Positions 7,330 to 40,649 of a DNA stretch of 42,964 nucleotides are shown here, one piece after another (the stretch's first letter is position 1; every line of letters begins with the position of its first letter). This DNA is from Basidiobolus meristosporus CBS 931.73 (Eukaryota; Fungi; Basidiobolomycota): contig MCFE01000709.1 of NCBI GenBank assembly GCA_002104905.1, positions 1-42,964 of the forward strand, written 5' to 3'. A program made the position numbers and the translations under genes. The notes beneath the pieces are model-generated. The model was not told the DNA's origin and did not search any database. It worked only from the letters and a program-made list of their open reading frames with translations.

Positions 7330-8975
7330 ATATCCCACAAGTGGATATAATCCAGATTAGCCACCAAAGTGCTGGCAGCTTGGAATTGTTGACCCACTTT
7401 ACAGTCTTATGATGGGATGGTGATGGCATTTTGCTGATTCTACGCTAAATAGGTAAGTAAATCTGATCATGTTTAGAAGGTCCATTGCCAAGATTTGAAT
7501 GTCAATCTGATGGTCTTATTTCAGCCCACAATTATTTCAGTAGCCCCAACCAGCCAGTGCATGCAAATGCCATATGTTGAAAAAACCTTATCAGTATGCT
7601 GACAGCTGTGATGCATACATCTGCTAGCTTTATAATGGCAGTATGACGGACTAAAGGTAGTACTGTAATATGCTACTGTACCAATATTCCAAATGCCATT
7701 TTTCTTTGCTACCACCCCTTGTGCAACTGATATATTTCATTATCATGTCACCCCAATTTATTTGCTCACCCACCTCTGCCATGGGTACTCCACATATAGT
7801 TTGTATTAAAAAAGACTATGACACCCTCCTTACTAATCTTAACATACATGCACAGCTGCTGTAATTGATACACTACTATAACCTCAACTTTATGGCTTTA
7901 TGGTGTGATAGTTGCAAGGTTGCCATATAGCTTGTATTGCTGGTAATATATATATTTTGCAAATCTTTGCTTAGTTGCTGCCACTTCTGCCGTTAGTACC
8001 TCTTGAATATCTGCAAAACACTTCTTGGGACTTGGCTAATATATTCCTTCTCCCTGCTGGATTCTTGTCTCCCTTATAGGTACCCACTGTTTCTTGTTTG
8101 TATGAACTCTGCATGAAATGGCAAAGAAAATGGCTTGTACCTAAGAGATGCCCAGCACACTTTTGTAAAGTTGTACTAATAAGACTTAGTTGCTTGTTGC
8201 ATCCAACCCAACCTTGCATTACTTAACTGATTACCTACACACTGGGGCTGCTTAGCATCTTGATGCCCAAATCCATGCACACATCTGTCCTCAATACTTT
8301 CTAACTTCTCCTGGCTGTCCTTCATGTGCCTGCTCATCAAATCCATGACAGACTTGAAGGTACTATTCCTCATGAGATTGGGATATTGTTATACTTGCAA
8401 CTTGACTTGACCTCCAATCTCCTCACACATCAGCTCCATAGGATACTGCCAAAAGGTGAAGAAAGGTCCAATATTCCCAACACACCAAGTTGTTTAAAAT
8501 AGAGACTGGATGCAGTAGCAGGAGAGATCTACATGCTCAGCCTTATGCTTGTAGTCTAGCCACTCAAATCCTGTGACAAACCACTTGCATAAAAGCTGCA
8601 GATGCATCAAGTTGGTATTGATGATCTGCTTGAGAATAAATATTCCTACAATGTTCACATGTGACTCCCAGTGCTTGCAATGCACTCTGGGTAGCATTTG
8701 CCATAGTAGACCACTTGAATACAAACACATCCAGTTCATCCAGTCCTTGCATTGGTGTTGATGCCTATGCATATGAGTATTTATTGGAGCTCATCAGAAA
8801 TACTTTGGGTTGTGAACACCCTGTAATATCTTGCCAATTCATTCAGATTTCCCCAATATCTCAAAGGGCCCATTTAGCTTGAAATGCCCATGTGCAACTT
8901 GGTCATTAATATAGGATACTGATGAAGAGCAAATGCATTGCTCCCAGTGGTAAGCTCTTGCACCAACAGATTCTC
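7330..8975 (-). mobile_element. CACTA/EnSpm transposon relic, copy B (C-terminal transposase half plus 3' region), pseudogenised
   Basis: Translates to CKDWMNWMCLYSSGLLWQMLPRVHCKHWESHVNIVGI...LHLQLLCKWFVTGFEWLDYKHKAEHVDLSCYCIQSL and KSVMDLMSRHMKDSQEKL, paralogous to copy A. Many stops. Ends approximate. Confidence 0.85.
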
Positions 8976-11950
8976 CCTATCTCTACAAAAAATAATTTGG
9001 TCCTGTGGGTGGATCCAATCCAGATCAGCCATCAGGATCCTGTTAAGAAACTGGCATAATACCAGCAGCTTGGAATTAGTGACCCTCTTAACAATCTTAT
9101 AACAGGATCACAATGGCATTTTGCTAATTCACTACCAAATATAGTGATATAACTTGACAGGGTTTGATAGGTGCTGTGATGATAATTGCATGGAATTGTT
9201 GCAGTCTTATTGCGCTCTACAACTATTTTAAATGGATCCAACTAGCCAGAACATCTGATTGCCTTATGTGGCAAGAAACTTGACAGTATTTCAACAAGCT
9301 CACTGCAAGACTCTGATGGCATTATATTGGCAGTATGGTGGCCTACAGCTGGTTCTGTATAATGCTACTATACCAGTTTACCAAATGGTATTTCCTTTTT
9401 CTACCTACCCTTGTGTAACTCATATATTTCACTGTAGAATCACCCCTCTTTATTTGCTTACCCACTAATACCTTGGGTATTCCGCATATAGTTTGAATAA
9501 AAAAAAACTATGGCCTCCTGCTTACTAACTTCTATAAATACACACACCTGCAGCATTTGACATACTTCTATCACCTCAACTTTATGACTTTTTAGTATGA
9601 TAAATGCAAAGTTGTGATATACCTTGTGCTGCTGGTAACATATACATTTTGCAAACATATGCTTGGTTGTTGCCACTTCTGCAATGAATACCTCCTAAAT
9701 ATCTGCAAAGAACTTCTTGATATTTAGCAAATATATTTCTTCTCCCTGTTGGATTCTATTCCCCCTTATAGGTGTGCTCTGGCTCTTGTTTGTGTGAATT
9801 TTATATTGAATGGTGTAGAAGTTGGCTTGTGACCATGAGAAATCTAGCATACCTTGGTAGAGTTTTCCTAATAAAAATTAGTTGCTTACTTCACCCAGCC
9901 CAACTTTGCATTACTCAGCTGTTTACCCATGCATTGGTACTACATAGCTTCTTAATGCCATAGGCATAGGTGTCACCATGTGCACATTTGTCCTCAGTAT
10001 TTTCAACTCTTCCTGGCTGTCCTCCATGTGCCAACTCATCACATCCATGACAGACTTGAAGGTAATATTCTTGATGAGATTGGGATATGGCAGTACCTGC
10101 ATCTTGACTAGTCTTCCTATCACCCCACACATCTGCTCCATAGGAAACTCCCAAAAGGTGAAGCAAGGTACAATATTCCCCACGCACCAAGCAAGGTGGA
10201 GTAGAGAATGAATACAGTAGCAGCAGAGATCTATGTGTTCAGATCTATGTTTGTAGTATAGCTGCTCAAGTCCCATTACAAACTCCTTGCACAACAGCTG
10301 TAGATGTGTCAAGTTGGCATTGGTGATCCACTTCTGGATAAGTATTCCTACAATGTCCACATACAACTCCCAATGCTTCCAATGTACTCTTGGCAGGAAT
10401 GACTTCAGAACACCACTTGAATAAATACATATCCAGCTCATCCAGTCTTTGCATTTGTCTTGTTGCATATGTGTAGGAATATTGACTGGAGCCTGTGAGA
10501 GGTGCTTAGGGTAGCAGATACTCTGGAATATCTGGCCAATTCTTTCAAATTTTTTGGTATCTCAATGGGCACATTTAGCTTGAAATGCCCCATGTACAAC
10601 TTGGTCATCAGTATAGGGATTTTGTTGAAAAGTACATGCATTGCTCCCAGTGGAAAGCTTTTGCTCCCACAAATACCTTCTATCTTAAGTATCTTTGGCT
10701 TTCAATTGATTCTATATTCTGGCCAATGGCCTATAGCTTGCCTACTTTGCTGCAATTGCATGCTGATGTCTGTATGTTCTCTCTATGGAAAGATGATGTT
10801 CTTAGTGCTGGTGTTTGGGTAATAATAATGTGTGTGAGTTATGGAGTAAATCCCCTGCATCTCACACATTTGACAGCAGCACTGTCCATTGTGCCCAGAA
10901 AAACCTGCTATCTTGCCGATGGCTGGGGTATCTCCAATGCAGATAATAATATGCACTTTTACATGATGGTCATATACTGTTTTCCTGCTGGAAAGCATAC
11001 AAAACTCATGCAGCAATGGATACAGATAGCTATTTAGGTTGTGCAGTGATTTAGGCCCAGATTACAGTGAGACTACCATCAGATTTTAGCTCTGATACTG
11101 TAAGATGGGCAGCAGATTCAGATTAATGAGAATCAGTGACCAGCAGGATTTGCTGGTAGAGTACTTGTTTAATGAGAATTCATCAAGTACCAAGGCAAAG
11201 GCAAGGTCATACATACCTTCAAAGTAGCCCTTGCTTTGCAGCTGTTTGTAATGTTTGCCATCAAGTATATTGGATATGTTTGCACTCAATTGATACCAAG
11301 TATGGTACTGTATAGCTTTGCAATATCTGTTGGACTGCATCAGCTTCCTCAGATGGGGTATTATTGGAATATATCTGGAGTGTCAACAATGTTATCCCTC
11401 AATGGTGATGGATTCCTGACAATTTGAACTCATTGCAATGGTAGCATTTTTGGATGTGAATGCCATGCAACTGTTAACACATGCTAGAATCAAGACAGTC
11501 TCTGGATCATATGTTGCCAGCCAGATGTCAGTTGTCCACTTGTACCATGCACATAGTAAGTTGCATCCTGGAATGATTTTGGCAAGCAGTAATAATATAT
11601 CCTCAAAGCCCCCATTACTGATATTAGTGGAAATGTGCCACTTCTCTGATCACAACATTACATCATTCACCAGTAGATGGATTACTGGGCTCACTTTGTT
11701 CCATTAAGTATCCTTGGCATTTGTTTCAATGCTTGTTTTTCATTGTATATTGGGATTTGATCAGGCTCATATGTGGTACTGTTGTTAGGGGAGATAGGCT
11801 CAAAATCCATCAGTGAACCTTCTTTGTCCAAACTATCACTCTGCATGCCATATTCAGAAGGCAGAGGTGAGCATAAAGGTGTCACAAACTCACCTGATTC
11901 AGTTTTTGCAAGGTGACAAAGATGGCAAGGTGCCAATATAGAAGTATCAA
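8975..11950 (-). mobile_element. CACTA/EnSpm (Transposase_21-type) transposon relic, copy A, with a near full-length pseudogenised transposase at ~9450-11950
   Basis: Motifs occur in the expected order: CVNSCMAFT; ILDGKHY...GYF...DLAFALVLDEF...WSLILINLNL; SGPKSLHNLNSYLYPL; IGDTPAIGKIAGFSGHNGQCCCQMC; CIHSLLHLAWCVGNIVPCFTFWEFPMEQMCG...PYPNL. Many in-frame stops and at least two frame changes. Confidence 0.9.
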
Positions 11951-12324
11951 ATGGCTGGTAAGATAATGTTGGTACAGTAGTGACTGATGAATGGTCAAAT
12001 ATGACTTGTGTGGCATAACACTGGCCGTGATCCTTGTAATACTTCCTATGCTGTCTGCATGCTTCATGGCTGAGAGGCTTGCCACAATAGCCACATGGTC
12101 TTGTTTCTCTTCCCTTTTGGCGTTAAGTCAAAGTAGTCTTGTCCTTGGGCAAACAGTTTGACCTTCAACAACAAAACGCTATTATATCACTTTTTGGTCA
12201 ATACTCATGTGAATTTAAGACAGTCTTGTACTTGAGACATTGCACCTACATGAATGTAAGATTCAATGATGACCTGCCATAGTAAGCATTATAATAAAGT
12301 TGTGGTACCACATACACACGTATA

Positions 12325-12445
12325 TATACCAATCTAAATCTGCCACCTATCTTGCAGTATCAGGGCAGAAATCAGATGGTAGTCTCACAGGTATCTGGGC
12401 CTAAATCACTGTCCAACCAAAATTGCTACCTGTATCCATTCCCTA
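12325..12445 (+). mobile_element. Short CACTA transposase fragment, an inverted copy of ~11020-11125
   Basis: Translates to NLNLPPILQYQGRNQMVVSQVSGPKSLSNQNCYLYP. Nucleotides match the reverse complement of 11020-11125. Confidence 0.8.
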
Positions 12446-12499
12446 TGAGAAATTATTGTGATGATCCCATCAAATGGATGTCACAGATTTAAAGCCCCA

Positions 12500-13370
12500 T
12501 GACTAAGTGGCACTGATCCTATCAGGGCAAGGTGCAAAGACTGCTGAAAAATAAATTCACCCCAGATTTCACAAAAGACTTAGTCAAAATATTTCATCAC
12601 AACAGTGTACAGATGGCTTTTGATTGGTTCCCTGCTAATTTGCTTATTTCCTGATCCCAGACACTCAATCACCTCCTATGCTTGTGTATATTGACTTGCT
12701 ACTGCCACTTTTTCACTCTTCTTACTTCCCAACTCAACTCTTTCTCCTACTTTTTGAGCATACAAGTTGATTTATTTATGTCAAAACTTCAGTTGTACCT
12801 CAATTGCCAACTGTATTGACCTATACAAGTCCTAATACACTACGCTAAAATTAAGCCCAACCCCACACTCAACAAGTAACTCCATTAAAATCCACCACAC
12901 ATTGAGTATATCTGCTGTAATGCTCTGTGTCCATGACTTTGGCAGGAACTGTGAGGCTGTATACCACTATTCATTCACTGGTTCCCATGCATCCTGGTCT
13001 TCAGCCAGCACTGCAAGGTCTGGCACCTCATCTGCCAGTCTTTGCAATAAATCCCTTCAATATTCAAGTGCTGTTTCTTGAGCACTGCTCTTGAACAAAT
13101 GTGCAACCTCTTGGTGTGCCTATTAATGTTCCAAAATTCCCCTGAAGGCATTGTGATAACCTTTTGAGTTGTTGACATTGTTACTTTGTCTGTCATTGAG
13201 ATATCTACTCTGTCAACAATGGATGATGTGGAGGCAGTGGCAGACAAATTTCTTTCTTGGCAAACTGATCTACCTTACTGGGGTATAGCTCAACAGACTG
13301 TGCTTCTAGCTCTTGTGAAAACAGCTGCTTTCTTGTTGGTAACTCTTCTTGGCAATGAAGGGATTTAGCC
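12500..13370 (-). pseudogene. Decayed copy of the unknown transposon-associated module plus flanking repeat
   Basis: EFWNINRHTKRL...AVLAEDQDA...ITADILNVWWILMELLVECGVGLN...DLYRSIQLAIEVQLK aligns to 15974-16550. 12555-12700 resembles 42740-42900 and the reverse complement of 16930-17090. Confidence 0.65.
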
Positions 13371-13427
13371 TGTTCCAGACTTATGGCATTTGTCTTGTAC
13401 TTTGTTTTCTACATGATGAATGCTCAA

Positions 13428-14985
13428 CTAAAGAATTTGCAAGATAGTACAGAGTATCTGTTACCCTAGGTACCTCTCATGGGCTCCAATCAATATTCAT
13501 ATGCATATTCAACAATACAAAAGAAAAGACTAGATGAACTGGATATTTATTTATTCAAGTGGTGTTCTGAGCCATTCCTACCAAGTGTACATTGGAAGCA
13601 TTGGGAGCCATATGTGGACATTGTAGGAATACCTATCCAGAAGCGGATTGCTAATGCCAACTTGATGCATCTACAGCTGTTGTGCAAAGAGTTTGCAACA
13701 GTATTAAGTCACTATACCATAAACATAAAGCTGAACATGTAGATCTCTGCCACTACTGTATCCATTCTTTACTCCACCTTGCCTGGTGTGTGGAGAATAT
13801 TGTACCTTGCTTCACCTTTTGGGAGTCTTCTATGGAGTGAATATGTGGGGAGATGAGAAAACAAGCCAAGTTGCATGTACTGCCATCTCCCAATCTCTTG
13901 AAGAATATTACCTTCAAGTCCATCATGGATATGATGAGTTGGCACATGTATTACAGCCAGGAAGAGTTGCAAAATATTGAGGGCAGCAGTGTGCATGGAG
14001 ACACCTATGCCTATAGCATTAAAAAGCTAAGTTGCCCCAATGCATGTGTAATCAGTTAAGTAATGCAAAGTTGGGTTGGGTGCAACAAGCAACTAATTTT
14101 TATCAGGAAAACTCTACCAAGGCATGCCAAATTCCTCTGGGTCACAAGCCAATTTCTACACCATTCAATACAGAGCTCTCATATACAAGAGCCAGAGTGC
14201 ACCTATAAGGGGAAATAGAATCCAGCAAGGAGAAGGAATATATTGGCTAAATACCAAAAAGTTCTTTGTGGATATTCAGGAGGTATTCATGGCAGAAGTG
14301 GTGGCAACCAAGCATATGTTTGCAAAATGTATATGTTACCAGCAATACAAGGTATGTGGCAACTTTGCAAGTATCACACTAAAAAGCCATAATGCTGAGG
14401 TGATAGAAGTATGTCAATTTCAGTAGGTATGCATGTTTGAAGAAGTTAGTAAGCAGGAGGCCATAGTAGTTTTTTGACTCAAGCTATATGTGGAATACCC
14501 TAGATAGTAGCAGGTAAGCAAATAAAGAGGGGTGATTCTACAGTGGAATATATGTATTATGCAAGGGGAGGTAGAAAAAGGAAAACCCATTTGGCAAATT
14601 GGTATGGTAGTATTATACATAACTAGCTGTAAACCACCATACTGTTGTGGTAATGCCATTAGAGGCTTGCAATGAGGCTGTCAAAACACTGGCAAGTTTT
14701 TTGTCATATTAGGCAATTGGATGTACTAGCAGGTTAGATCCACTCAAATAGTTGGAGAGCGCACTAAGACTGCAACAATACCTTGCCACCCTTGGTAAAA
14801 CACTGTTATGTTTTTTAACTTTATTTGGCAGTCAAATTAGCCATACACCATTGTGATTCCATTACAAGATTGTGTAGAGTGTCATTAATTCAAACTTGCT
14901 GGTATTACAATGGTCTTCTGATGGGATTCTGATGGCTGATCTGGATTGGATCCACTCATGGGACCAAATTATTTTTCATAGGGGA
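13428..14985 (+). mobile_element. CACTA transposon relic, copy C (C-terminal half plus 3' region), inverted relative to copies A and B
   Basis: Base-by-base similarity to the reverse complement of ~8990-10540. Example: gactagatgaactggatatttatttattcaagtggtgttctga vs gactggatgagctggatatgtatttattcaagtggtgttctga. Translates FLPSVHWKHWEPYVDIVGI and LPSPNLLKNITFKSIMDMMSWHM. Confidence 0.85.
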
Positions 14986-18887: not shown

Positions 18888-21800
18888 CTAGAATGAAGGA
18901 GGAGGTACAACTAGTACAGTTTCCTTCGTGGTCTGGACCTTTTCTGGATTTTGTTTGGCATTAGCGCCAGTGTCTTTGTTCGGTTGCTCGTTTAGTATGT
19001 TTCCACGAGCTTCGGAAGCAAGCTTTCGAATGTGGTCTCTGGCCTCTTCGAACTTCTTCTGGACATCCTCTGAGATGGCCGAGTGTTTGCTGTCGCTAAC
19101 CACTGAGGCGCTTGGGGCAGCGGCAGTGGTGGGCTTATTGTTAAGGCTTTGGACTCTCGAGTATAAGCTATTACCGGCCTCCTTAATGCTCTCCCAACTG
19201 CCACTGCTGACAGGCTGTGAAGCCGACAATACAACACTTCCTACCGATTGGGCCTTTTGGTTCAACTTTTGGTATTCCATGTTTGCGTTGTCGGATGCAC
19301 TTTGGGCTATCGACACAACAGACGATTTGCCCTGCTGGTAAGCACTTCCGGCTCCATGATATACAGAAGATCCATAGCCTGAAGCCGCTGTGGCAACACT
19401 TGAGATGACGCTGGACGCTTGGTTGTATGCGCTACCAGCTTGGTTTGAGGCAGATGAAGCTACACTCTGAGCAGCGGACTTTCCTTGATACACGGCATCT
19501 CCTAACTTCACAGATCCGGAAGATACGATGCTAGACAGTTTGGCAGTTCCCTGGTGATACGCAGCCGAAGTGACGCTGGCAGCGCCGGCAGCAGCGGTCT
19601 TGATACTTGCGCTAGCTTGGTTTACCATGACGGAACCTTTATTAGCACCCTGGGCAACAACTGAGGTAGCAGCAGTATATATACTTTGTGCCGCCTGGCT
19701 AGCACTGTTCAATTGCTCATTTCCAAGGCTTCCAACGGAGGCAGCAGCGGATGTTACGACTGATTGCGCGTTGCTGTAAGCATTCTGACCTGCTTGTTTG
19801 CCAGCTTGATAGTACTCACCAGCCTGCTTTTGGGCTTGAGATGCTTGTGAAGCAATAACTGAAGCGGCTGATTGAGCCACAGATTGAACGTTACTATAAG
19901 CACTTTGGCCGGCTTGACCACCTGCTTCATAGTACTTGTTAGCCTGTTGGCGGACTTCGGTTGCTTGTGATACAATGGCGGAGGTGGCTGCCTGGGCAGC
20001 GGTTTGCGCGTTGCTATATACACTTTGACCCGCTTGTTTGCCAGCCTTGTAATATTCACCAGCTTGCTGTTGGATATTTGTTGCTTGCGAAGCAATCACT
20101 GAGGTGGCTGCTTGAGCAGCAGTTTGGACATTGCTATATACACTCTGACCCGCTTGCTTGCCAGCCTCGTAATATTCACCAGCTTGCTTTTGAGCATTGG
20201 AGGCTTGAGAAGCCACGGCTGAGGTGATTGCTTGAGCGGCAGTTTGGGCATTGCTATAGATGCTCTGGCCTGCCTGTCTGCCAGCTTGATAATACTGACT
20301 AGCTTGCTTCTGCGCCACAGAAGCAGCAGATTGACCAGCGGTTTGAGCCCGACCATAGGCTTCTTGACCATAGGACTGGGCAATAGATGCATAGTCGCCT
20401 GCTTGGTCTTGTACAACGGAGGCGGCATATTGGGCTTGCGAAAAAACGATTTGTCCACCCTGTCTAGCAGCATCATATGCTTGATCGACAATACTCTGAA
20501 CGGGGGTAGCATAGGCTTTAGAGGCAGCTGACGCAGCAGAGTTCACATAAGAAAAGGCGATTTGACCACCCTCTTTAACAGCTTCGTTGACCCTACCAGC
20601 AGCGCTCTGAACAACTGGTGCTCCATAACCGTAGGCGTCATTAGCATAGCTGTAGACAGTAGGAGCAACCGATTGAGCATATTGATACGCATCTTGGCCG
20701 GCCTGTCTGGCAGCATCATAAGCTTGGCTGGCAGCGCTTTGAGCGTGAGGAGCTGCTTGGGAAGCAACAGAGGTGGCATATTGGTAGGCATTCTGGCCGG
20801 CCTGCTTGACATCAGGGGCGATTGAAGTAGCATAATTGTACACGTTGGAAGCGGCACCCTTAATGGCTTCTTTAACGGAAGCCTCTGCAGCATAAGAGGT
20901 AGCAGATTTGATGGCCTCACCAACTGGTTCGATGACCACTTTCTGCACCTTCCCTGGGACATCTTCAGGTATCATATTCGAAATCTTGGCAACAATCGGT
21001 GCAATGTGCTCATTGTAATGAGGAGCAACATAGGTTTGATAGTAAGGCGAGACGTATTTGCTGTAGCAATGATCGACCGCAGGTTTCAAGTTCTTGTTGT
21101 AGAGTTCGACGGCCTGATTCCATGCGTTGAGTACGGTTGGCTCGATGTTCTTGCGGTAGATGATTTGTGACTTTTCCCATCCTTCTTTGGCCGCGGGAAC
21201 AACTTTGGTGTGGTATACCTCCTTGCCTTTAGTCAATCCATCTTGGGTGAGTGGTACTATCTGGGTGTGGAACACCTCGATGCCTTTGACGTAACCTCTT
21301 TTGGCGAGTGGCACTACATGGTTGTTGTAGATTTCGACACCTTGGGTGAATCCTCTCTTACTTAGTGGAACGACATGGGTTTTGAATACCTCAGAACCTT
21401 TGACGAGGCCCTGCTTTGCCAATGGTACGGCATGTTGATGGTACACTTTGACTGCGCCATTCCATGCAGATTCAGCGTGAGGGGCAATAGCCTTATGGGC
21501 GGGCGAGTAGTAGTCTTTTAGGAACACCTTCCACTTGGGCTCGACGTAGGTACGGTAAGACTCATCAACTTGGGCTTGGGCTTTGAGAACATGTGGGTGT
21601 AAATATGCGTAGTACGATTGAGTTGCATGTTCGCCCAACTTCCGAACATGAGGCTTAGCGTGAGTGTGGTAGGTTACAACGCCTCTGTCCAACAGACTCA
21701 GCATAAATGGATGACCATGCTTAGTATACACCTCACGTGTCTGTTTAACGACAGGTTGGGCATATGAAGTATAGTAGTCATTGGCTTGGTCAACATAGGG

Positions 21801-22391
21801 GGCGAGCTTTTCTTGATAGTGTTCGTTGGCCTGTGCAACGTATGGCTTAGCATACTCCTCGTAGTTCTCCACAACAACAGGATGGATGTTCGAGTCATAG
21901 TATTCATAGGCATTATCCACGACAGGCTTTACATGAGGATGTAGAGTATCGTATAGCTGCAAAGCTTGTTTACAGAATGGCCCGGGGTTGGAACGATCTT
22001 CGGGGCAAATGGCGATGGCAGCATAAACAGCATAGACAAGAATTCCGTAGAAAACGGTCTTGATGATGGTGAACAGTCCGCTTCTCTTGGCTTTCTTACT
22101 ATGATGGACCTGTTTTGTTCCCTGCCGGTAACCAGGTTAGTATTACTGGATCGGAAAAAAATCGAAGAATCGGCATACTTTTTCGGCTAGGAGCGGCTCC
22201 GTGAGCACCTCCTCGCCAAGTTTTTCGTGAGCCAGGGCAAACGACGGAGGTGGCATCTCGTTTGTGGGAGAAGAGGTGGAGCCGTTAGGCTTATCTTTGG
22301 TGAAAGAAGAGCGTCAGTGCCTGTTGGTCGAAGGAAGGTCGGAAAAGGGTGGCTTACTTTTCTTGTGACTACTCTTGGTTTTCTTCGCCAT
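18888..22391 (-). CDS. ~1127-aa single-pass membrane/secretory-pathway repeat protein with SHE10-like architecture. Exons 22391-22358, 22294-22179, 22121-18888.
   Basis: ATG at 22391. Introns GTAAGC..CACTGAC..AAG (22357-22295, 63 nt) and GTATGC..TACTAAC..CAG (22178-22122, 57 nt) join in frame to the long ORF. Product: basic N-terminus MAKKTKSSHKK, hydrophobic LFTIIKTVFYGILVYAVYAAIAI, CPEDRSNPGPFC, Pro-punctuated Tyr/His helices, then an A/Q/S/Y-rich repeat region. The SHE10 likeness is from architecture only. Confidence 0.85.
19735..20312 (-). repeat. Five tandem 120-nt (40-aa) coding repeats, consensus QKQAGEYYxAGKQAGQSxYSNAQTAAQAATSxIASQAxxx
   Basis: Unit starts at 20312, 20192, 20072, 19952 and 19832. 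The last unit is partial. Confidence 0.9.
21084..21482 (-). repeat. Seven tandem 57-nt (19-aa) Pro-punctuated coding repeats
   Basis: PHAESAWNGAVKVYHQHAV / PLAKQGLVKGSEVFKTHVV / PLSKRGFTQGVEIYNNHVV / PLAKRGYVKGIEVFHTQIV / PLTQDGLTKGKEVYHTKVV / PAAKEGWEKSQIIYRKNIE / PTVLNAWNQAVELYNKNLK. Confidence 0.85.
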
Positions 22392-29460: not shown

Positions 29461-32316
29461 TTAGTGGGATTTTTCGGATGCATGAGGCTTGTCTGAAGTC
29501 AATGGTTGGTATTGATGCTTGTAAGAGACTCTGGCAAGCTGAAGCATGAAGTCCTCCAGATTCCTGTTCTTCCTTGACTTCGGTGACTTGCCATGCACAA
29601 GTCGATCAAATCCAATAGAGTTCGACAGCAACATGTACACCAGCGCCATGACACAGAACACCCCGAATGAGAACAGCCAGATACGCACCACCGTGACAAT
29701 ATCCGTGCGTGTCCCAGTGAACCATCCGAAGATGGCAAACAGCGACGCAAGAATGTCCACGACAAATACCGCTCCGGCCAGCTGCCATGATGGGAGACTG
29801 CCAAAGAATGAGGTGCTCAGTCGAGTGATGAAGATCAGCCAGTTCTCGGTAAGCACCACTTCCAGGAACATCACCTCTTGCGAGCCACCAAAGTTCTGGA
29901 TGACCCCTTGTCCTTGGACTAGAGTGGTGGTGAAGATGATCCAGGTCCCGGCAGCAAGGATCACTGCCATGACAAGAGAGAGGCCCCAGAGCTTCGGGAT
30001 GTTCCACTTGACCGGGGAGAGAGAGTAGGGCGCATTGTCGTAGGCCACCATGAGTGTGGCGATATCCGCGAAAATAGCGATGAACACCACCAGCTCCACG
30101 TTGATTGTCTGATCCAAGATCACCATGGTGCTGGTGAGGAAGATCTCCAGATGAAGTGACAAGGCGATGCGATAGATGATGTACGCGTGCATCCGGTGGA
30201 AGATCTGTCGAGAGGTCTTGATCGCATCAATAATCACCCCCAGCCCCGGTGCAAGGAAGACGATATCAGCGGCACTTCGAGCAGCGTCGCTCGATCCCTC
30301 CACCGCAATCCCCGTGTCGGCCTTCTTGAGCGACGGAGCATCGTTGACACCATCCCCAGTCATGGCAACCAAGTAGCCACGCTTCTGCAGAATGTCCACC
30401 GCGTGGTACTTGTGCTCGGGGAACACTTCGGCAAATCCGTCCGCAGCCTCCACAAAGTCGTACAACTCCGAGCCAGTCATCTCGCCGGAGCCTGAGGCTC
30501 CACCCTGAGTCATGCCCAGCTTGTCCGCAATGTAGATGTTCGTTCCCATTCTGAGCTGACGCGCAGTCTCCTTAGCAATGCCTACCGCATCGCCCGTGAG
30601 CATCTTCACCTTCAGTCCGAGCTCCTGGGCCTCAGCAATGGTCTTTGCCGTATCGTAACGTGGCGGGTCAAAGAGTGGCAGGATGCCGAGGATCTGCCAT
30701 CCGTTCGCGGGGGTGTACCAGGCAACGCCCAAGCTTCTGAAACCACGATCGGCAAACTCAGCAACCACCTCCTCGTACTGGTGTGCAATCGCGGGATCCA
30801 GCTTGCTCTCCTCCTGGACCATTCGCAGGACAAACGGTGGTGCTCCCTTGACCGCGATGCACTGGTTGCCCTCGGGATCGATCACCTTGGCCAGGACCTT
30901 CTTCGAGACCGGGTCGAACGGCTGGAACTCCTGGATTCTGTACTCGCGCATGTTTCGCCGTGCCTGTGGATACTTTCCCAGCGCCTTGATCACCGCCTTG
31001 TCAATCGCGTCCATTCCCTTCTTCTTGCGTGAGGCCGCGAGCGCCGAGACAAAGATCAGCATCTCATCGTCCACTCCCTCCACACAGAATGGCTCATGCA
31101 GGGTGAGTTTGTTCTGCGTTAGGGTGCCGGTCTTATCCGAGCACAGAATCTCCACCCCTGCTAGCGACTCGATCGCTGTCAACTTTTGCACGATCGCCTT
31201 CTTCTTCGCCAGGAACGCTGCCCCGACCGCCATGGTGGTTGTCACTACTGCCGGCAGTCCCACCGGGACTCCAATCACCGTGATCACCAAGGTGTACTCC
31301 AGCAAGCGGACGATCCCAGTCGACCGGTAGAATCCCGAGATCCAGATGATGAGTAGCCAGATGATGACCAGAACCAGGAGAACCATTCCAATCCCGTTGA
31401 TCACCTCAGTAAAGTGGCCCACTCCGTTGGACTTGCCAGCCAGTGTTGCCGCTCTTCCCACGAATGTCTTCTCGCCGATAGCCGTCACCACCGCATATGC
31501 TCTTCCACGCTTGATGCAAGAGCTGCTGTATAGACTGTCACCAGGGCCTTTGCTCGCCGCCAATGACTCGCCTGTCAGCGCCGACTGATCCACTTGTAGC
31601 CTGGCATCCTCCCCCAGGACACGCGCGTCAGCCGGGACAATGCTACCGTCCTCCACCAATATGATGTCCCCTGGAACAAGTGTATTCGCCTCAATCTCCC
31701 GCTCCTGTCCATCTCGTACTGCCACTGCCGATAGGGCCAGCGTTTGCTTCAGTTGGTCGATGATGTTTCCTGCTTGGTACTCCTGGACGAATCCGACGAA
31801 CGCATTGAGCAGGAGCAGCCCAATGATCACCCCAAGATCAACCCAATCTTGAAGGCCACCCGCCAGACATGCCGCTATCCACATCACGTACTGGATGGGG
31901 CCACAGAAGAACATGAAGAACTTGATGATCTTGTTCTCTTTCTCGTGCGAGAGCTGGTTGAGCCCGTACTTCTTTCTTCGCACCTCCACCTCTTCCGAGG
32001 TCAGCCCCTTTCGCACATCTGTCTGGAGCAGCTCCTCGGGTATCACCACCTCCCTGGGGCCATCCTCACTCTCCTCTTCATCGTCCGGAATATCCTCCTC
32101 GTCACTCCAGTCGTAGTCACTCATCACGGAGATGGCTGCTGCTGACTGTTGAGTATCTTTTTTGGTCAAGGGTGCTGCAGGCAACAACTGGTTTAACTGG
32201 CCTTTTTCATTTTCGGCACCAGAAGTGCTCTCGTGATTGCCGCTGCGCCCGGGGGCATCCTTAAACTGAACTGAGGGTTTGTTCGATAAGGTATTGGGGG
32301 CTGGGCTTTCTGGCAT
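29461..32316 (-). CDS. PMA1: Plasma-membrane H+-ATPase (P3A-type), copy A, 951 aa, intronless
   Basis: [13 protein letters not shown] (phosphorylated Asp), [33 protein letters not shown] and the C-terminal LEDF..RVS motif. Confidence 0.98.
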
Positions 32317-32441
32317 TGTTTCCTCCGCAAACAGAGTTGGTCAATCGCTTGATAAAACCCGGAAGTAAAGTTTGATTGGAGAAAAATGGAATAGCCGAAT
32401 AGATATTAGTTGATATGGCTACCGGAGGTGGAGATGAAGGA

Positions 32442-32449
32442 TTTATATA
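32442..32449 (-). promoter_or_regulatory. Candidate TATA box (TATATAAA) of PMA copy A
   Basis: Plus-strand tttatata, ~125 bp upstream of the ATG at 32316. Confidence 0.5.
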
Positions 32450-35205
32450 TCCGCTTGATTAGGGGTGTCTTGCAAACGTAGGCATAAACGTAGACCGAAG
32501 TTTATTGTGCTGATCTATTGTGCCGGATATGTGTATTGCAATGCTGAATAACCATCGAATCGTACCAACAACTCATGAAATGTCTCCCTCTCGGATCCAT
32601 TCAACCATTCAAGACCACATGTTGCTACAATGATAGCTATATGGTGATCAGTTTATCTCCACCACCGACCTACAATAGTAAATGAAATATTCCTCTATTG
32701 ATCCATCAGTCGCTCCACCAACCAGGTCTCATCTGGAAATTCTGCATATGATATGATGCCCATCGATTCGCACCCAATCAGCGTTGCATCTTCGTTTAGT
32801 ACGGATGATGGCGCTTCATTGGGTATTCTGCGTCATTACCACTTCTTTAAATAGAACTCATCCTGATATGAAACTCGAGCCAACCCTGATGTGATTTGGG
32901 CCAACATGACCTGTTTTTCCTTTTTAGGAAGAGCTGCTTTATTGTGCATTGGCAATTTTGCATGAATCAAGTCGCTCTAGGTTAAACCTAAATGTCGGGA
33001 GAAGTGCCCGCAAATTCCGAACCGCATCGATAATGGGCACTACACAACAATCGTTATAGATGGAGGTGATTCAGATACCCTGGTCGTATTATTGCTTGAA
33101 CTGAATCCCAATACAATACTGGCAGTCGCTACATTGGCGCCCTTCCCGCCTTGAATCTCGGGTTTCCTCCTGAAGATACGAATTCGGTGAAGGAAATCAG
33201 TGTAAGGGCTATTAAACCAAGCCAATGGTCATCTTAGGTGGCGTTTGATAAAACCCCACCACGAAGGCTACTGGTGTTATGTAGTGGGTATGCAATGCTG
33301 GGCCATTTTAAATATGGCTCATTCTTTTGGGGGACATTCCAATGACACGATCATGTCAACGGCCAGGACCATTCACCCACCGCTATTTAGACCCTGCCAT
33401 AGCGAGAAAATCATCGTCGCCAATATGTAGGTAGAAAACCCACTTTGCTAGTTCGAGTAATTGTATTACCCATCAAACAGGGGGATTTCACGGCTTGAAA
33501 TGGCCGAAAGCAGAGGTGGTTCAACCAAGACACGATCTCTGGTTCGGTTGTGATGGGAATGTTTGCTTAATTCTGACTCCGATGACACATCACTTGTATG
33601 GCTACATGGTTGTATCTGCTTTATCCAAACCGCCAAGCAGCAAATTTGCTTGCGAGTCTGCATTCCGAATGACCCTCGAGCATGCAATATCTTGATTGAT
33701 CAATCTTCAAATATTGAAGTGTATAGAGTACGCAGCTCACATGTTTGCATTCTGATATCGGCCAAGCTCATATACGCTGGTTCGCAATACGAATGAATCA
33801 TTTCTAAATATAGGCGGAGTAGTTGGGTGTGGCCAATCAGCGGTCAACAACCCTGTATCCAAATGTAGCGGGCAGTAGATTTCTTGTCTAAGATGGAGGG
33901 GAAGAAGCCCCAGAGACAGAAACAGTATTTCGGACTGAATTAGAGAACATCGACATCCGATATGAAAAAGATATCTTCTCAGCTGAGGCAGCTACTGGTA
34001 GCCAGCAACCGCGCAAAAAGACTGGCCTACTGGTTATCGCCTTTCCTGCGTCCACATGTTGGCATTCGCTTGTACATCTGGAAGACGCACTCAACCACAA
34101 TGGCATCTGAGACTGCTTCAGCGGATGGCAAATGCCAGAGCACCAGGCGAAGATCCTGGTCTTTGCATGGTTTCAGGGTTCGTTGTGTATATCCAGAAAA
34201 CGCCATGATTTCTAGATGAAGGAAATAATGTGTAGGGGCTGCAGCAGAATGTTGGAGTACATATCCAGCGGTAGTCGTGAATCGCCCAATCATCGTTGGC
34301 CTCCATATATCACCATCAGATTTGCCAACAATACGAAACCATCCGGAGCCGCGTCTATCGTTTGTCCTCTGGACGACAACACTATTGTCCGTGTTCGATC
34401 TACTACTCCTGAGTTGGGTTGGATTCAATATGCTACAAACAGCCAGTAAGCAAAGCTGCATTTGCTTACTGACAGAAATCGCTATCCCAAGTGTACAATT
34501 CAGCAGTCTGATCACATGTGACCCATCCTTCAGTCTACAATGTAGCCATCGTATCGATTCATTCATCGAGTTGTTGGCCGCAAATAATTGCAGTCCGACA
34601 CCGGTGAGACATTGAGATACTGCCCAGCACCCAGAGATGGCTGGATACTGAAAGCGGATAAAGCATAGTGCCATATGATGTGTCAGCATTCCTCACATAT
34701 TATTCGATTGTGCGGGAGGGGAAGCACCGAAAACAAAAGATAGGCATCCACAAGATGGCTAAATGATATTTCCATGCTTGATGGACAGCAATAAGATACG
34801 GGGTGACTGGGCAGGAAAGAATCGAGAAACAAATAAGGGGGCGTTCGGCCATAGGCTGGAAAAAGAATTTAAGCTTTAAACAATGACGGAATGCAATCCG
34901 AAAGCAGCCCACGCATAATCATGTTGTAGACCGAGTTGGCAAATGTTGGTTTATTGTACAACCCGCATTCTCTCCACATTCCCTAAACCAACTTTAGTTA
35001 GGTATGAACAAATGCCATGTACGAGAAGCTCTCGTAGCATACGAAACCGATTGGCCCCCAGGTGGTTTTGATTGGGATTCCCAGCGATTACCACCTCAGG
35101 TAGTGCACTCGCCATGCCAGAAGGTTACGTGATCTTATTGAGGACGTATTATTGTTGGCTCTGAGCATTTGAACTGAGATCTGATTCTCAGGGCGATCCC
35201 TAGGC

Positions 35206-35213
35206 TATATAAA
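35206..35213 (+). promoter_or_regulatory. Candidate TATA box (TATATAAA) of PMA copy B
   Basis: tatataaa, ~92 bp upstream of the ATG at 35305, followed by a CT-rich leader. Confidence 0.5.
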
Positions 35214-35304
35214 CCCGCCAACCTCGAGATTCACCCATCACCACATCTACTCACATTTCTGTTTACACCCTTCACTTGAACAGAGCCAGTGTAAAGAAAA
35301 AAGG

Positions 35305-38151
35305 ATGTCCAAGAAAGAGGCTCTCAACCAACCGATAAAAAATAGCCCGTCGGTGCAATTCCGCTCAGAGCGGGAGGTACCCGATCGAGATGAAGGCGGG
35401 GATTTGGGCGAGCGAAATTTTCACCCTACCGCACCTTTGGCCAAAAAGGATACTCAACAGTCAGGAGCAGCCATCTCCGTGATGAGTGACTACGACTGGA
35501 GTGACGAGGAGGATATTCCGGACGATGAAGAGGAGAGTGAGGATGGCCCCAGGGAGGTGGTGATACCCGAGGAGCTGCTCCAGACAGATGTGCGAAAGGG
35601 GCTGACCTCGGAAGAGGTGGAGGTGCGAAGAAAGAAGTACGGGCTCAACCAGCTCTCGCACGAGAAAGAGAACAAGATCATCAAGTTCTTCATGTTCTTC
35701 TGTGGCCCCATCCAGTACGTGATGTGGATAGCGGCATGTCTGGCGGGTGGCCTTCAAGATTGGGTTGATCTTGGGGTGATCATTGGGCTGCTCCTGCTCA
35801 ATGCGTTCGTCGGATTCGTCCAGGAGTACCAAGCAGGAAACATCATTGACCAACTGAAGCAAACGCTGGCCCTATCGGCAGTGGCAGTACGAGATGGACA
35901 GGAGCGGGAGATTGAGGCGAATACACTTGTTCCAGGGGACATCATATTGGTGGAGGACGGTAGCATTGTCCCTGCTGACGCGCGTGTCCTGGGGGAGGAT
36001 GCCAGGCTACAAGTGGATCAGTCGGCGCTGACAGGCGAGTCATTGGCGGCGAGCAAAGGCCCTGGTGACAGTCTATACAGCAGCTCTTGCATCAAGCGTG
36101 GAAGAGCATATGCGGTGGTGACGGCTATCGGCGAGAAGACATTCGTGGGAAGAGCGGCAACACTGGCTGGCAAGTCCAACGGAGTGGGCCACTTTACTGA
36201 GGTGATCAACGGGATTGGAATGGTTCTCCTGGTTCTGGTCATCATCTGGCTACTCATCATCTGGATTTCGGGATTCTACCGGTCGACTGGGATCGTCCGC
36301 TTGCTGGAGTACACCTTGGTGATCACGGTGATTGGAGTCCCGGTGGGACTGCCGGCAGTAGTGACAACCACCATGGCGGTCGGGGCAGCGTTCCTGGCGA
36401 AGAAGAAGGCGATCGTGCAAAAGTTGACAGCGATCGAGTCGCTAGCAGGGGTGGAGATTCTGTGCTCGGATAAGACCGGCACCCTAACGCAGAACAAACT
36501 CACCCTGCATGAGCCATTCTGTGTGGAGGGAGTGGACGATGAGATGCTGATCTTTGTCTCGGCGCTCGCGGCCTCACGCAAGAAGAAGGGAATGGACGCG
36601 ATTGACAAGGCGGTGATCAAGGCGCTGGGCAAGTATCCACAGGCACGGCGAAACATGCGCGAGTACAGAATCCAGGAGTTCCAGCCGTTCGACCCGGTCT
36701 CGAAGAAGGTCCTGGCCAAGGTGATCGATCCCGAGGGCAACCAGTGCATCGCGGTCAAGGGAGCACCACCGTTTGTCCTGCGAATGGTCCAGGAGGAGAG
36801 CAAGCTGGATCCCGCGATTGCACACAAGTACGAGGAGGTGGTTGCTGAGTTTGCCGATCGTGGGTTCAGAAGCTTGGGTGTTGCCTGGTACACCCCCGCG
36901 AACGGATGGCAGATCCTCGGCATCCTGCCACTCTTTGACCCGCCACGTTACGATACGGCAAAGACCATTGCTGAGGCCCAGGAGCTCGGACTGAAGGTGA
37001 AGATGCTCACGGGCGATGCGGTAGGCATCGCTAAGGAGACTGCGCGTCAGCTCAGAATGGGAACGAACATCTACATTGCGGACAAGCTGGGCATGACTCA
37101 GGGTGGAGCTTCAGGCTCTGGCGAGATGACTGGCTCGGAGTTGTACGACTTTGTGGAGGCTGCGGACGGATTTGCCGAAGTGTTCCCCGAGCACAAGTAC
37201 CACGCGGTGGACATTCTGCAGAAGCGTGGCTACTTGGTCGCCATGACTGGGGATGGTGTCAACGATGCTCCGTCGCTCAAGAAGGCCGACACGGGGATTG
37301 CGGTGGAGGGATCGAGCGACGCTGCTCGAAGCGCCGCTGATATCGTCTTCCTTGCACCGGGGCTGGGGGTGATCATTGATGCGATCAAGACCTCTCGACA
37401 GATCTTCCACCGGATGCACGCGTACATCATCTATCGCATCGCCTTGTCACTTCATCTGGAGATCTTCCTCACCAGCACCATGGTGATCTTGGATCAGACA
37501 ATCAACGTGGAGCTGGTGGTGTTCATCGCTATTTTCGCGGATATCGCCACACTCATGGTGGCCTACGACAATGCGCCCTACTCTCTCTCCCCGGTCAAGT
37601 GGAACATCCCGAAGCTCTGGGGCCTCTCTCTTGTCATGGCAGTGATCCTTGCTGCCGGGACCTGGATCATCTTCACCACCACTCTAGTCCAAGGACAAGG
37701 GGTCATCCAGAACTTTGGTGGCTCGCAAGAGGTGATGTTCCTGGAAGTGGTGCTTACCGAGAACTGGCTGATCTTCATCACTCGACTGAGCACCTCATTC
37801 TTTGGCAGTCTCCCATCATGGCAGCTGGCCGGAGCGGTATTTGTCGTGGACATTCTTGCGTCGCTGTTTGCCATCTTCGGATGGTTCACTGGGACACGCA
37901 CGGATATTGTCACGGTGGTGCGCATCTGGCTGTTCTCATTCGGGGTGTTCTGTGTCATGGCGCTGGTGTACATGTTGCTGTCGAACTCTATTGGATTTGA
38001 TCGACTTGTGCATGGCAAGTCACCGAAGTCAAGGAAGAACAGGAATCTGGAGGACTTCATGCTTCAGCTTGCCAGGGTCTCTTACAAGCATCAATATCAA
38101 CCGGTGCCACTACACCAACCTGGTCCGCCGTCCGAGAAGTCTGCCCAGTAG
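35305..38151 (+). CDS. PMA1: Plasma-membrane H+-ATPase (P3A-type), copy B, 948 aa, intronless
   Basis: Same P-type motifs as copy A. Core identical except Q/K in AIAH[Q/K]YEE. Different termini. Confidence 0.98.
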
Positions 38152-38769: not shown

Positions 38770-39720
38770 AGGAATCCTTTGTTCAACTCTTAGAGGTACT
38801 GTGCTTTAGAAATTATGTCCTTAAAAGCAGTCTTCATGCTGGCTCTTTCAGCTCCAATGGTCAGTAAATATATTTATATCTGCTAATATATGAAATGCAA
38901 TGATGAAGCACCCAGAGATCTTTGGCCATTAACCTCCTTGAGACCTTAAAGGATGCATAAGTGTTTATGAGTACTTACTCTTTATAAGCTTGACAAACAT
39001 CCAGCTGGCAGATGGAAAGCCTGGATTAGGTTGATATACTGGTGTCCCTGTGAAAAGTAATTTTCATAAATCCATTATTAGACCATCACAAGATTAAGAT
39101 TCAATGACTGAGAGGTTTTAATGGTGTCAGGACACCTTAAAAACACAGCAAGAATTGAACACCACCCTGAATGCTAGCAAAAACTTAGACAACACTTTCT
39201 AATCCAGCTGAATAGCTTCACACCAAGTACAAACATTGCCCAGGTATTAGTGCACAAACCATATCACAATCTGATGTTGAGTGATTCCCATTTTGGTTGA
39301 CTGGTTGTCCAGCTTCTCTTAGACTGACCAATCACCAAACCTCAATGTGTACTTGGGCTTGTTGTCATTTGCTACCTAATTAGTCATTTCACATATCATA
39401 ATGTATAACTTCACCAATCTATTACACTTAAAGCTCATTGACCAACACATGTTGGAAAACCAGACTTAACTCATTCCAGTTTGTAATAATTGCAAGAGTC
39501 TTGGAGATATTGGGAATGATTTGGGGCAATAGGGATTATCAAGTAGATTATGCAATTCTCACTTAGTGATTTATTGAATATCAAAGTAGTGCTTATAAAT
39601 CTACCTGATTGTGTCAAGATCATAGTGTGGAATACAATTAAGTATGTCCTAAGAGCATGGGCATAAAGTAAGGAGCTATAGAGTCCATTTTGAAAAACTT
39701 CATGCACATGGCATATAATA
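38770..39720. repeat. Unidentified CpG-depleted repeat relic
   Basis: Almost no CG. 39490-39550 resembles the reverse complement of 16810-16860 (ccaatatctccaagactctt). No domain recognised. Confidence 0.45.
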
Positions 39721-40452
39721 GACTTGTTCCATTGGATAGTGCCACATTGAGCCATGAGTGCCAAATGATGCCATAGTGTGCCAGAGAGGTCAAGTAAGCC
39801 TATACTTGGCCACAGAGTGTGAAACATAGCTCTGCATCTTCATGCAAAGCAGCCCCTGTGTTTCACCCATTGCGCAGAAGAAAATCCATTTTTTGACCTT
39901 TTTTTGTGGATCAATGTAGCTCAGGATGTGTAAGAGCACAGGAGAACTGAAGATATGCATCTGGTACTCAATACTCATGGCACTCTGAATCTAACTCCTG
40001 TAGCTTGTATCATGTCACAAAAATGAATGGCACTATCTTGGTCCACTGATACTATCTGGCACTATAAGTGCTTTGTATAGATCTTACTTCAGGGCTAATA
40101 TTTAAATATAGTGCCAGATAGTACCAGTGGACCAAGATAGTGCCATTCATTTTTGTGACATGATACAAGCTACAGGAGCTAGTTTCAGAGTGCCATGGGT
40201 ATTGAGTACCAGATGCATTTCTTCAATCTGCTTGTGCACTAACACATCCTGCACAACATTGATCCAAAAAAAAAGGTCAAAAAATGGATTTTCTCCAACA
40301 CAATGGGTGAAACACAGGGGCTGCTTTGCATGAAGATGCGGAGCTATGTTTCACACTCTGTGGCCAGGTAGAGGCTCACTTGGCCTCTCTGGCACACTAT
40401 GGCATCATTTGGCACTCATGGCTCAATGTGGCACTATCCAATGGAACAAGTC
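39721..40452. mobile_element. 732-bp foldback/MITE-like element: 346-bp inverted arms, 40-bp spacer, flanked by TA on both sides
   Basis: TA|GACTTGTTCCATTGGATAGTGCC...CTGGCACTATA (39721-40066); spacer 40067-40106; TATAGTGCCAG...GGCACTATCCAATGGAACAAGTC|TA (40107-40452). Confidence 0.92.
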
Positions 40453-40649
40453 TAATGTTTTAGAGAAAATCCTCCAAGTGAATTCCAGCAAGAAATTTGG
40501 TTCAAATACTCTAAGATTTGTAAGTAAAGATTTAGGTGACTGAGTTATGTGAGTACTCTGGTATAAATACAAAGCTCACACATTCCCACTTAGCTAAACA
40601 GTGTATTAATTGGGCCTAATCACAATATGAAATACCCACATTTGGCTCT

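Follow-up and report, generated by a model that had tools for sequence, protein, structure and literature searches.

The DNA analyzed here (the window) is a stretch of 42,964 nt from Basidiobolus meristosporus CBS 931.73 (GCA_002104905.1, contig MCFE01000709.1, positions 1 to 42,964, forward strand). An ORF search identified two genes, A and B, that lie head to head, with start facing start across a 2988-bp spacer; the structure of the pair, read from one assembly, is as follows:

29461..32316, minus strand: gene A, intact intronless P3A plasma-membrane H+-ATPase, 951 aa
35305..38151, plus strand: gene B, intact intronless P3A plasma-membrane H+-ATPase, 948 aa
29510..32139, minus strand: homogenized core, A arm, 2630 bp, 15 mismatches against the B arm and no indel
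35467..38096, plus strand: homogenized core, B arm, 2630 bp, in which A position p pairs with 67606 − p
32140..32187, minus strand: 5′ transition zone of A, codons 44–59, partner B 35419–35466, intermediate divergence
32188..32316, minus strand: distal N-terminus of A, codons 1–43, counterpart B 35305–35418, saturated and old, with indels
29503–29541, minus strand: 3′ transition zone of A, partner B 38065–38103
29461–29502, minus strand: diverged C-terminal tail and stop codon of A, partner B 38104–38151
32317..35304, no strand: unique spacer, 2988 bp, containing both promoters, its halves without similarity

The public model of gene B (P0121) begins at the internal Met60; because the SVQF and PL-KKDTQQS motifs, common to the whole PMA family, sit upstream of this residue, we favor 35305 as the start. 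The only long ORF in the spacer (34027–34689, minus strand) resembles random sequence, and no Pfam domain was found in it. Inverted similarity between the two halves of the spacer nowhere exceeds 16 nt, in agreement with an earlier reading made from the sequence alone (the sequence-only reading), which had seen no similarity between the promoters. When the spacer was scanned for sigma-70 promoters and terminators no excess appeared, and the scan was set aside, as the model is inapplicable to a fungus. In a neighboring gene, the L003 copy contains introns.

Both A and B contain the Pfam domains Cation_ATPase_N (PF00690), E1-E2_ATPase (PF00122) and Hydrolase (PF00702), and gene A aligns over residues 21–935 to the Neurospora Pma1 structure (1mhs) and over residues 77–936 to the yeast Pma1 structure (7vh5), in each case with E = 0. 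The three catalytic motifs TGES, DKTGT (containing the phospho-aspartate) and GDGVNDAP are all aligned in A, and B matches A across this part of the protein except for a Q/K difference at A residue 513. A and B are fungal Pma1-type P3A H+-ATPases, and ATP-driven proton export is their predicted activity. Residues 918–936 of A ([19 protein letters not shown]) align to residues 898–916 of yeast Pma1, the C-terminal autoinhibitory R domain, and are predicted to function as an R domain of the yeast type, a domain that has been reported in the B. meristosporus pump ORX81303 (PMC9708826). We considered horizontal transfer from ascomycetes as the source of this type of PMA, which is unnecessary because the same TM4 motif type is listed for the chytrid Spizellomyces (PMC9708826).

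One inverted repeat was detected (29485–32181 / 35425–38121), and the A/B pairing is ungapped, with p + q = 67606 throughout, confirming the proposal that 32139 pairs with 35467 and 29510 with 38096 without an indel. Over the 2630 bp of 29510–32139 the arms differ at 15 sites (99.43% identity), comprising 14 synonymous changes and one Q/K replacement (CAG at A residue 513, AAG at B residue 508). The sequence-only reading had the replacement right and had counted 14 substitutions, 13 of them synonymous, while allowing for a few more. Across the 876 codons of the tract the two pumps thus differ by this one residue, with a dS of 0.022 and a dN of 0.0005. When identity is measured per 50-nt bin, it stays at 0.92–1.00 inside 29500–32150 and lies at the chance level of 0.24–0.40 outside. 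Each core difference is private to A or to B, and both copies bear changes derived since the event that made them alike.

The ends of the two genes are very different. The terminal motifs quoted in the sequence-only reading are present in A and B ([36 protein letters not shown]), and the C-terminal tails, unequal in length, end in SEKSH and SEKSAQ, respectively. In the distal N-terminus, where the DNA of A and B is practically unalignable, 10 of the 12 conserved codons carry synonymous changes, vs 13 of 829 in the core (Fisher p = 1.6e-15), which bears out the description of the termini as heavily diverged. Values of pS between A and B reach 0.70 in the N-terminus and 0.77 in the C-terminus, and three of the five conserved codons of the C-terminal tail are synonymously changed. 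The transition zones are intermediate: on the 5′ side, 2 of 11 conserved codons show synonymous changes (p = 0.015 vs core), with five amino-acid differences, and on the 3′ side synonymous changes affect 3 of 13 codons (p = 0.0014 vs core). Alignment of the A and B 3′ flanks gave no match. Outside the tract, protein differences are confined to the unconserved first ~58 and last 13–15 residues.

Between A or B and the Basidiobolus ranarum orthologue, core pS is 0.81, which is saturated and therefore rules out codon constraint as the cause of the A/B identity. The B. ranarum contig aligns to the window solely inside the coding core, at 77%, while its flanks do not align, and no head-to-head partner was found within 3.4 kb upstream of the B. 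ranarum gene. A tree of the whole protein, with ~92% of its columns taken from the core and one copy representing B. ranarum, recovered ((A,B),B. ranarum) with support of 97/98; the termini of that one copy mix A-like with B-like states and group with neither. As a control, two loci of the same genome (P0002) are 98.6% identical over 9.2 kb including their flanks, which shows what to expect of a simple young duplicate or a haplotig in this genome.

The same pattern extends across the PMA family, which has at least 13 copies in the genome. In a nine-gene tandem PMA array, pairwise similarity of 79–97% is restricted to the 2.6–2.8 kb gene bodies, with no alignable spacers, and a further paralogue pair (T943/T937) combines a core dS of 0.12 with saturated termini. 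The stretch of A and B that can be aligned with distant paralogues, 29505–32172, is nearly the same as the converted tract, which fits with tract ends that are set by homology.

The contrast in divergence between core and ends, the sharp boundaries, the synonymous sites that are free to change and the repetition of the pattern across the family are together best explained, we conclude with considerable confidence, by ectopic gene conversion in a pair of old inverted paralogues, over a tract that runs as far as their homology does. Specifically, A and B would be old inverted paralogues of the plasma-membrane H+-ATPase, and homologous-recombination repair would have drawn on one copy to restore the other in an ectopic, non-reciprocal conversion that overwrote ~2.6 kb at a time equal to a dS of ~0.02. 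At both ends the tract would have halted where the paralogues were already too diverged for heteroduplex extension, positions that on the protein are those where conservation across all fungal Pma1 proteins starts and stops. The outcome would be near-identical pumps under unrelated promoters, distinct at their first ~58 and last 13–15 residues. An older duplication with a recently homogenized core, as the sequence-only reading had proposed, is supported by the core dS of 0.022 next to saturated termini and unalignable flanks. Its further suggestion of a catalytic core set against regulatory ends that are kept distinct was overstated, because the tract takes in the whole conserved protein, including the membrane domain, and the canonical C-terminal R domain falls inside it. 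Tract ends fixed by loss of homology would account for the boundaries, with no need of selection for distinct ends.

That reading had also held the core to be repeatedly homogenized. Clustering of the 15 core differences is not significant (scan statistic P = 0.04 at a single width of the three used, 0.22–0.25 at the others; largest gap P = 0.44), so a single conversion event is enough for the core data. The two intermediate boundary zones and the recurrence across the family hint at conversion more than once and lend modest support to this part of the claim.

Taken by itself the core resembles a young duplicate, and we therefore considered whether the whole gene was duplicated recently in inverted orientation, its termini and flanks having since either diverged very fast or been replaced from other paralogues, for which the PMA copies in this genome offer potential donors. 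This is very improbable, as fast protein evolution cannot saturate the conserved codons of the termini, the promoters and 3′ flanks have nothing in common, and none of the eleven other PMA copies examined has termini near those of A or B; moreover, swapping both ends of a young copy would in itself amount to two conversion events. A word search of 5.8 billion proteins with the N-terminal 62 residues of B, a query too short for such a search, found no match for B-type termini or a donor. We give as little credence to an assembly or polishing artefact, in which reads of two more divergent paralogues were mixed so that their consensus cores look alike. PacBio reads, from which the CBS 931.73 assembly was built (PMC7466969), usually span a 2.6-kb repeat, 15 differences were kept, each private to one copy, and the sharp boundaries fall within reading frames that remain intact. 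Polishing is also unable to turn saturated sites into a divergence of 0.02, and array pairs with 3–12% core divergence, too distant to collapse, show the same contrast between core and flank.

The arrangement could also be functional in its own right, if crossing-over within the inverted cores reversibly inverted the 5′ halves together with the spacer. Each promoter would then exchange its C-terminal tail and 3′ UTR for those of the other gene, in the manner of a regulated or bet-hedging switch. The inverted repeats, 2.6 kb long, 99.4% identical and separated by 3.3 kb, are well suited to inversion, and both genes would stay intact after it. Such a switch nevertheless seems most unlikely: the single assembly contains only one orientation, no recombinase was found in the spacer, whose sole long ORF has no Pfam domain, and the tails to be swapped are 13–15 unconserved residues past the canonical R domain. 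Occasional inversion would be an expected by-product of the same recombination and would not count as evidence of function.

Gene conversion of this kind is a known and ordinary process, of which the A/B pair is a new instance. Arm-to-arm gene conversion occurs in large palindromes, those on the human Y chromosome among them, and like them the A/B pair consists of inverted repeats that flank a unique spacer, with near-identity that intrachromosomal conversion would maintain; Y palindrome arms, however, measure tens to hundreds of kb and include intergenic DNA, whereas the A and B arms are one gene body bordered by old divergent sequence. Within the same gene family, ectopic conversion between Saccharomyces cerevisiae PMA1 and PMA2 (Harris et al. 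1993, as tabulated in PMC3924818) is likewise a non-reciprocal transfer between H+-ATPase paralogues with differing N-termini. The yeast genes sit on separate chromosomes with about 85% identity, and their conversion was measured experimentally at about 5e-9, whereas A and B form an inverted pair only 3 kb apart with 99.4% identity in the tract, and their conversion is deduced from sequence. Duplicated ribosomal-protein genes of fungi undergo concerted evolution that recurs in early-diverging fungi (PMC6993855); as in the PMA pair, these are highly expressed genes with homogenized coding sequences and diverged promoters and flanks, but the PMA tract ends within coding sequence. In the ribosomal-protein genes, contrasts between introns and exons indicated cDNA donors (PMC6993855); for the PMA conversion the kind of donor cannot be told because the genes are intronless.

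The A/B pair alone opens no new mechanism, and its value lies in offering a textbook-clean case of interlocus gene conversion from an early-diverging fungus in which the process has hardly been described, each end of the tract being located with a precision of about 15 codons. It leaves two nearly identical proton pumps under unrelated promoters, distinct solely in their unconserved tails. Trees of Basidiobolus PMA genes will date the last conversion and not the duplication, which is probably true of other families in this genome. More tentatively, and on balance we doubt it, A and B may be one symptom of unusually high ectopic conversion throughout the genome, pushing synonymous sites toward GC. 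Many paralogue families would then keep conserved cores near-identical while their ends and flanks drift, and crossing-over in inverted cores would also yield inversion isomers that swap pump tails. In favor of this are the pattern across the 13-copy PMA family, a GC3 of 0.71 in the A/B core vs 0.52 in the N-termini of the same genes, and the direction of the polarizable recent changes in A and B, seven of eight of which run from AT to GC.

Two long ORFs in the window face each other start to start:

29461-32316, minus strand: gene A, long ORF of 951 aa
35305-38151, plus strand: gene B, long ORF of 948 aa

Cation_ATPase_N, E1-E2_ATPase and Hydrolase domains were found in both, and the gene A product can be aligned from end to end with the plasma-membrane H+-ATPase structures solved for Neurospora (1mhs) and yeast (7vh5), with the TGES, DKTGT and GDGVNDAP motifs all conserved. 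Both genes are predicted to be intact, intronless P3A proton pumps. The closest relatives of the gene A product (74-87% identity) all come from B. meristosporus CBS 931.73, a strain reported to have been sequenced with PacBio (PMC7466969). For gene B, the public model P0121 (889 aa) begins at internal Met60, leaving 35305-35481 upstream; because the ORF in that part contains the SVQF and PL-KKDTQQS motifs shared across the family, translation probably starts at 35305.

We detected one inverted repeat, 29485-32181 against 35425-38121, in which position p of one arm pairs with 67606-p of the other throughout, without an indel. Its core (29510-32139 in gene A, 35467-38096 in gene B) has 15 mismatches over 2630 bp (99.43% identity), 14 of them synonymous and one a Q/K exchange; the sequence-only reading, which counted 14 and allowed for a few more, was thus one short. 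Identity per 50-nt bin is about 0.96-1.00 within the core and drops to chance level (0.24-0.40) over no more than two bins on either side, confirming the near-identical core with diverged ends described in that reading, and the terminal motifs it quoted are present in both genes. No inverted similarity longer than 16 nt was found in the 2988-bp spacer between A and B, and the 3′ flanks of the two genes do not align with each other.

By the Nei-Gojobori method, the A and B cores (876 codons) differ by a dS of 0.022 and a dN of 0.0005, whereas pS is saturated in the N-terminal (0.70) and C-terminal (0.77) parts. To guard against alignment artefacts, codon counts were limited to codons with the same residue in A and B: synonymous change affects 13/829 of these in the core, against 10/12 in the distal N-terminus (Fisher p = 1.6e-15) and 3/5 in the distal C-terminus (Fisher p = 5.7e-5), and all six conserved codons of the N-PSVQF motif differ. 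Codon constraint does not protect the core, as comparing it with P0122 (locus L006), the relative from Basidiobolus ranarum, gives a pS of 0.81 at 77% DNA identity. Since core synonymous sites are free to diverge, a recent whole-gene duplication would have left as much similarity in the ends and flanks as in the core, and this origin was rejected because the ends are saturated and the flanks unalignable; the earlier proposal of an old duplication with a homogenised middle is therefore right. As a control within the genome, the two loci encoding P0002, another PMA protein of this species, stay alike along 9.2 kb that include 3 kb of flanking sequence on either side:

L001 6747-15975 and L002 4799-13987: near-identical P0002 loci, 98.6% identity

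Their 2868-bp coding sequences show six differences, all synonymous, and the loci represent haplotigs or else a very recent segmental duplication, one copy lying on a 14-kb contig.

At both edges of the core, divergence is intermediate:

Gene A 32140-32187: 5′ zone of 16 codons, 2/11 conserved codons changed (p = 0.015 above core)
Gene A 29503-29541: 3′ zone of 13 codons, 3/13 codons changed (p = 0.0014 above core)

These zones may be leftovers of older, slightly longer tracts, and past them the DNA of A and B is not alignable. Distant paralogues (L001-L003, 74-77%) align to 29505-32172 of A/B, which nearly coincides with the putative converted tract, and on the protein this tract is the part alignable with yeast and Neurospora Pma1. 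A tract matching the span of remaining homology is expected if heteroduplex is unable to extend into already diverged sequence, so that selection for distinct ends is not needed. The earlier statement that the regulatory ends stay distinct goes too far, because the yeast-type C-terminal R domain (A 918-936, aligned with yeast 898-916) lies inside the homogenised tract and is identical in A and B. This stretch covers the yeast positions Ser899 and Ser911/Thr912. The proteins differ in their first ~58 residues, a stretch that lacks conservation across fungi, and in a 13-15-residue extension past the yeast C-terminus.

B. meristosporus has at least 13 genes of the A/B type. Ten carry consecutive accessions (ORX92659-92668) on MCFE01000265.1, nine of them forming a tandem array and one encoding P0002; A, B and a second P0002 copy on MCFE01001184.1 are the further three.

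L003, L004, L005 (MCFE01000265.1, about 11-66 kb) and L001: run of PMA-type genes

All pairwise DNA matches in the array (79-97% identity) are restricted to the 2.6-2.8 kb gene bodies, and the 1.3-2.3 kb spacers show no alignment to one another; in the neighbouring array genes T943 and T937, core dS is 0.12 and the termini are saturated. The A/B pattern is on these grounds the rule for the PMA family, and the array sequences suggest array-wide gene conversion on MCFE01000265.1. Several public array models are shortened (853-866 aa).

The A/B pattern very probably reflects ectopic gene conversion between old inverted paralogues with homology-limited tract ends, whereby one core would have been converted from the other and the tract would halt where homology between the paralogues gives out. 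As the genes have no introns, genomic DNA and cDNA donors are not distinguishable; cDNA donors have been proposed for fungal ribosomal-protein gene conversion, and fungi offer well-documented examples of concerted evolution in coding cores (PMC6993855). Ectopic conversion also occurs in this gene family in yeast, where PMA1/PMA2 is a classic assay, as tabulated in PMC3924818. The mechanism is thus of an ordinary, already known kind, and this instance is new: full-text literature searches on gene conversion or PMA1 in Basidiobolus found no account of it. A young duplicate whose ends diverged fast or were swapped is most improbable given their synonymous saturation and the absence of a terminus donor among the eleven other copies. 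We give equally little credence to an assembly artefact having made the cores alike, because A and B retain private differences and array pairs show the contrast between core and flank too, at a core divergence (3-12%) that an assembler could not collapse. The inverted geometry of the cores would suit a purposeful flip-flop of the spacer region, but nothing else observed at the locus speaks for it and it is very unlikely; crossing-over in the core, which would invert the spacer and swap the tails, may well occur occasionally.

Under ectopic conversion, the 15 core sites record what followed. Polarised against seven other family members, the derived allele lies in A at some sites and in B at others, which would fit independent mutation after one event, and with these outgroups the sites show no sign of a third donor. 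Seven of the eight polarisable sites (at least 5/7 outgroups agreeing) changed from AT to GC. GC3 is 0.71 in the core, 0.51-0.53 in the A/B N-termini, 0.51-0.59 in other paralogues and 0.43 in B. ranarum. Two processes would each account for the high core value: GC-biased conversion, and selection favouring codons that end in C, acting on a highly expressed gene.

In a maximum-likelihood whole-protein tree, in which the core supplies most columns, B. ranarum P0122 is sister to (A,B) with support 97/98, P0002 falls outside this group and the tandem array forms a separate clade, so that the duplication splitting P0002 from the A/B lineage predates the B. ranarum split. The P0122 termini combine A-like states (AENE, LLP, PLTKK, final H) with B-like ones (MS-KK, VPDR, PTAPL), and its 10,965-bp contig holds no partner gene within the 3.4 kb upstream of it or the 4.7 kb downstream. 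A published catalogue of B. meristosporus P3A pumps has nine entries, ORX81304 among them, and names ORX81303 as the sole non-ascomycete match to the yeast R domain (PMC9708826); being consecutive and absent from the other eleven family accessions, these two are probably A and B. Among the best 120 matches to A/B, the non-Basidiobolus ones (60-68% identity) are ascomycete or metagenome sequences, with no zygomycete- or basidiomycete-named proteins. The A/B TM4 motif is of yeast type (IGVPVGLP); three more B. meristosporus pumps have the usual zygomycete type (AAIPVCLP), and one chytrid has both types together (PMC9708826). An ancient retained paralogue is a more likely origin of the A/B pump than ascomycete transfer.

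Two neighbouring elements recur at other PMA loci:

18888-21962, minus strand: 1024-aa ORF without a Pfam domain, on the strand of gene A and downstream of it
39719-40454: hairpin element, 1.6 kb downstream of gene B
L001 15731-16386 and L002 13765-14236: hairpin copies (81-88% identity), each ~3 kb downstream of its P0002 gene

The ORF product is histidine/proline/tyrosine-rich with a helical-repeat appearance, and a 52% identical, intron-containing paralogue lies downstream of T943 in matching relative orientation (L003 17025-18155), which points to an old segmental duplication linking the A/B and array loci. The hairpin has 348-nt arms (93% complementary) and a 40-nt loop, and represents a MITE-like transposon or else a relic of common ancestry of the 3′ regions. 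Large transposon-like blocks at 7350-14983 of the window are 78-87% identical to L002 515-4237, upstream of the second P0002 copy.
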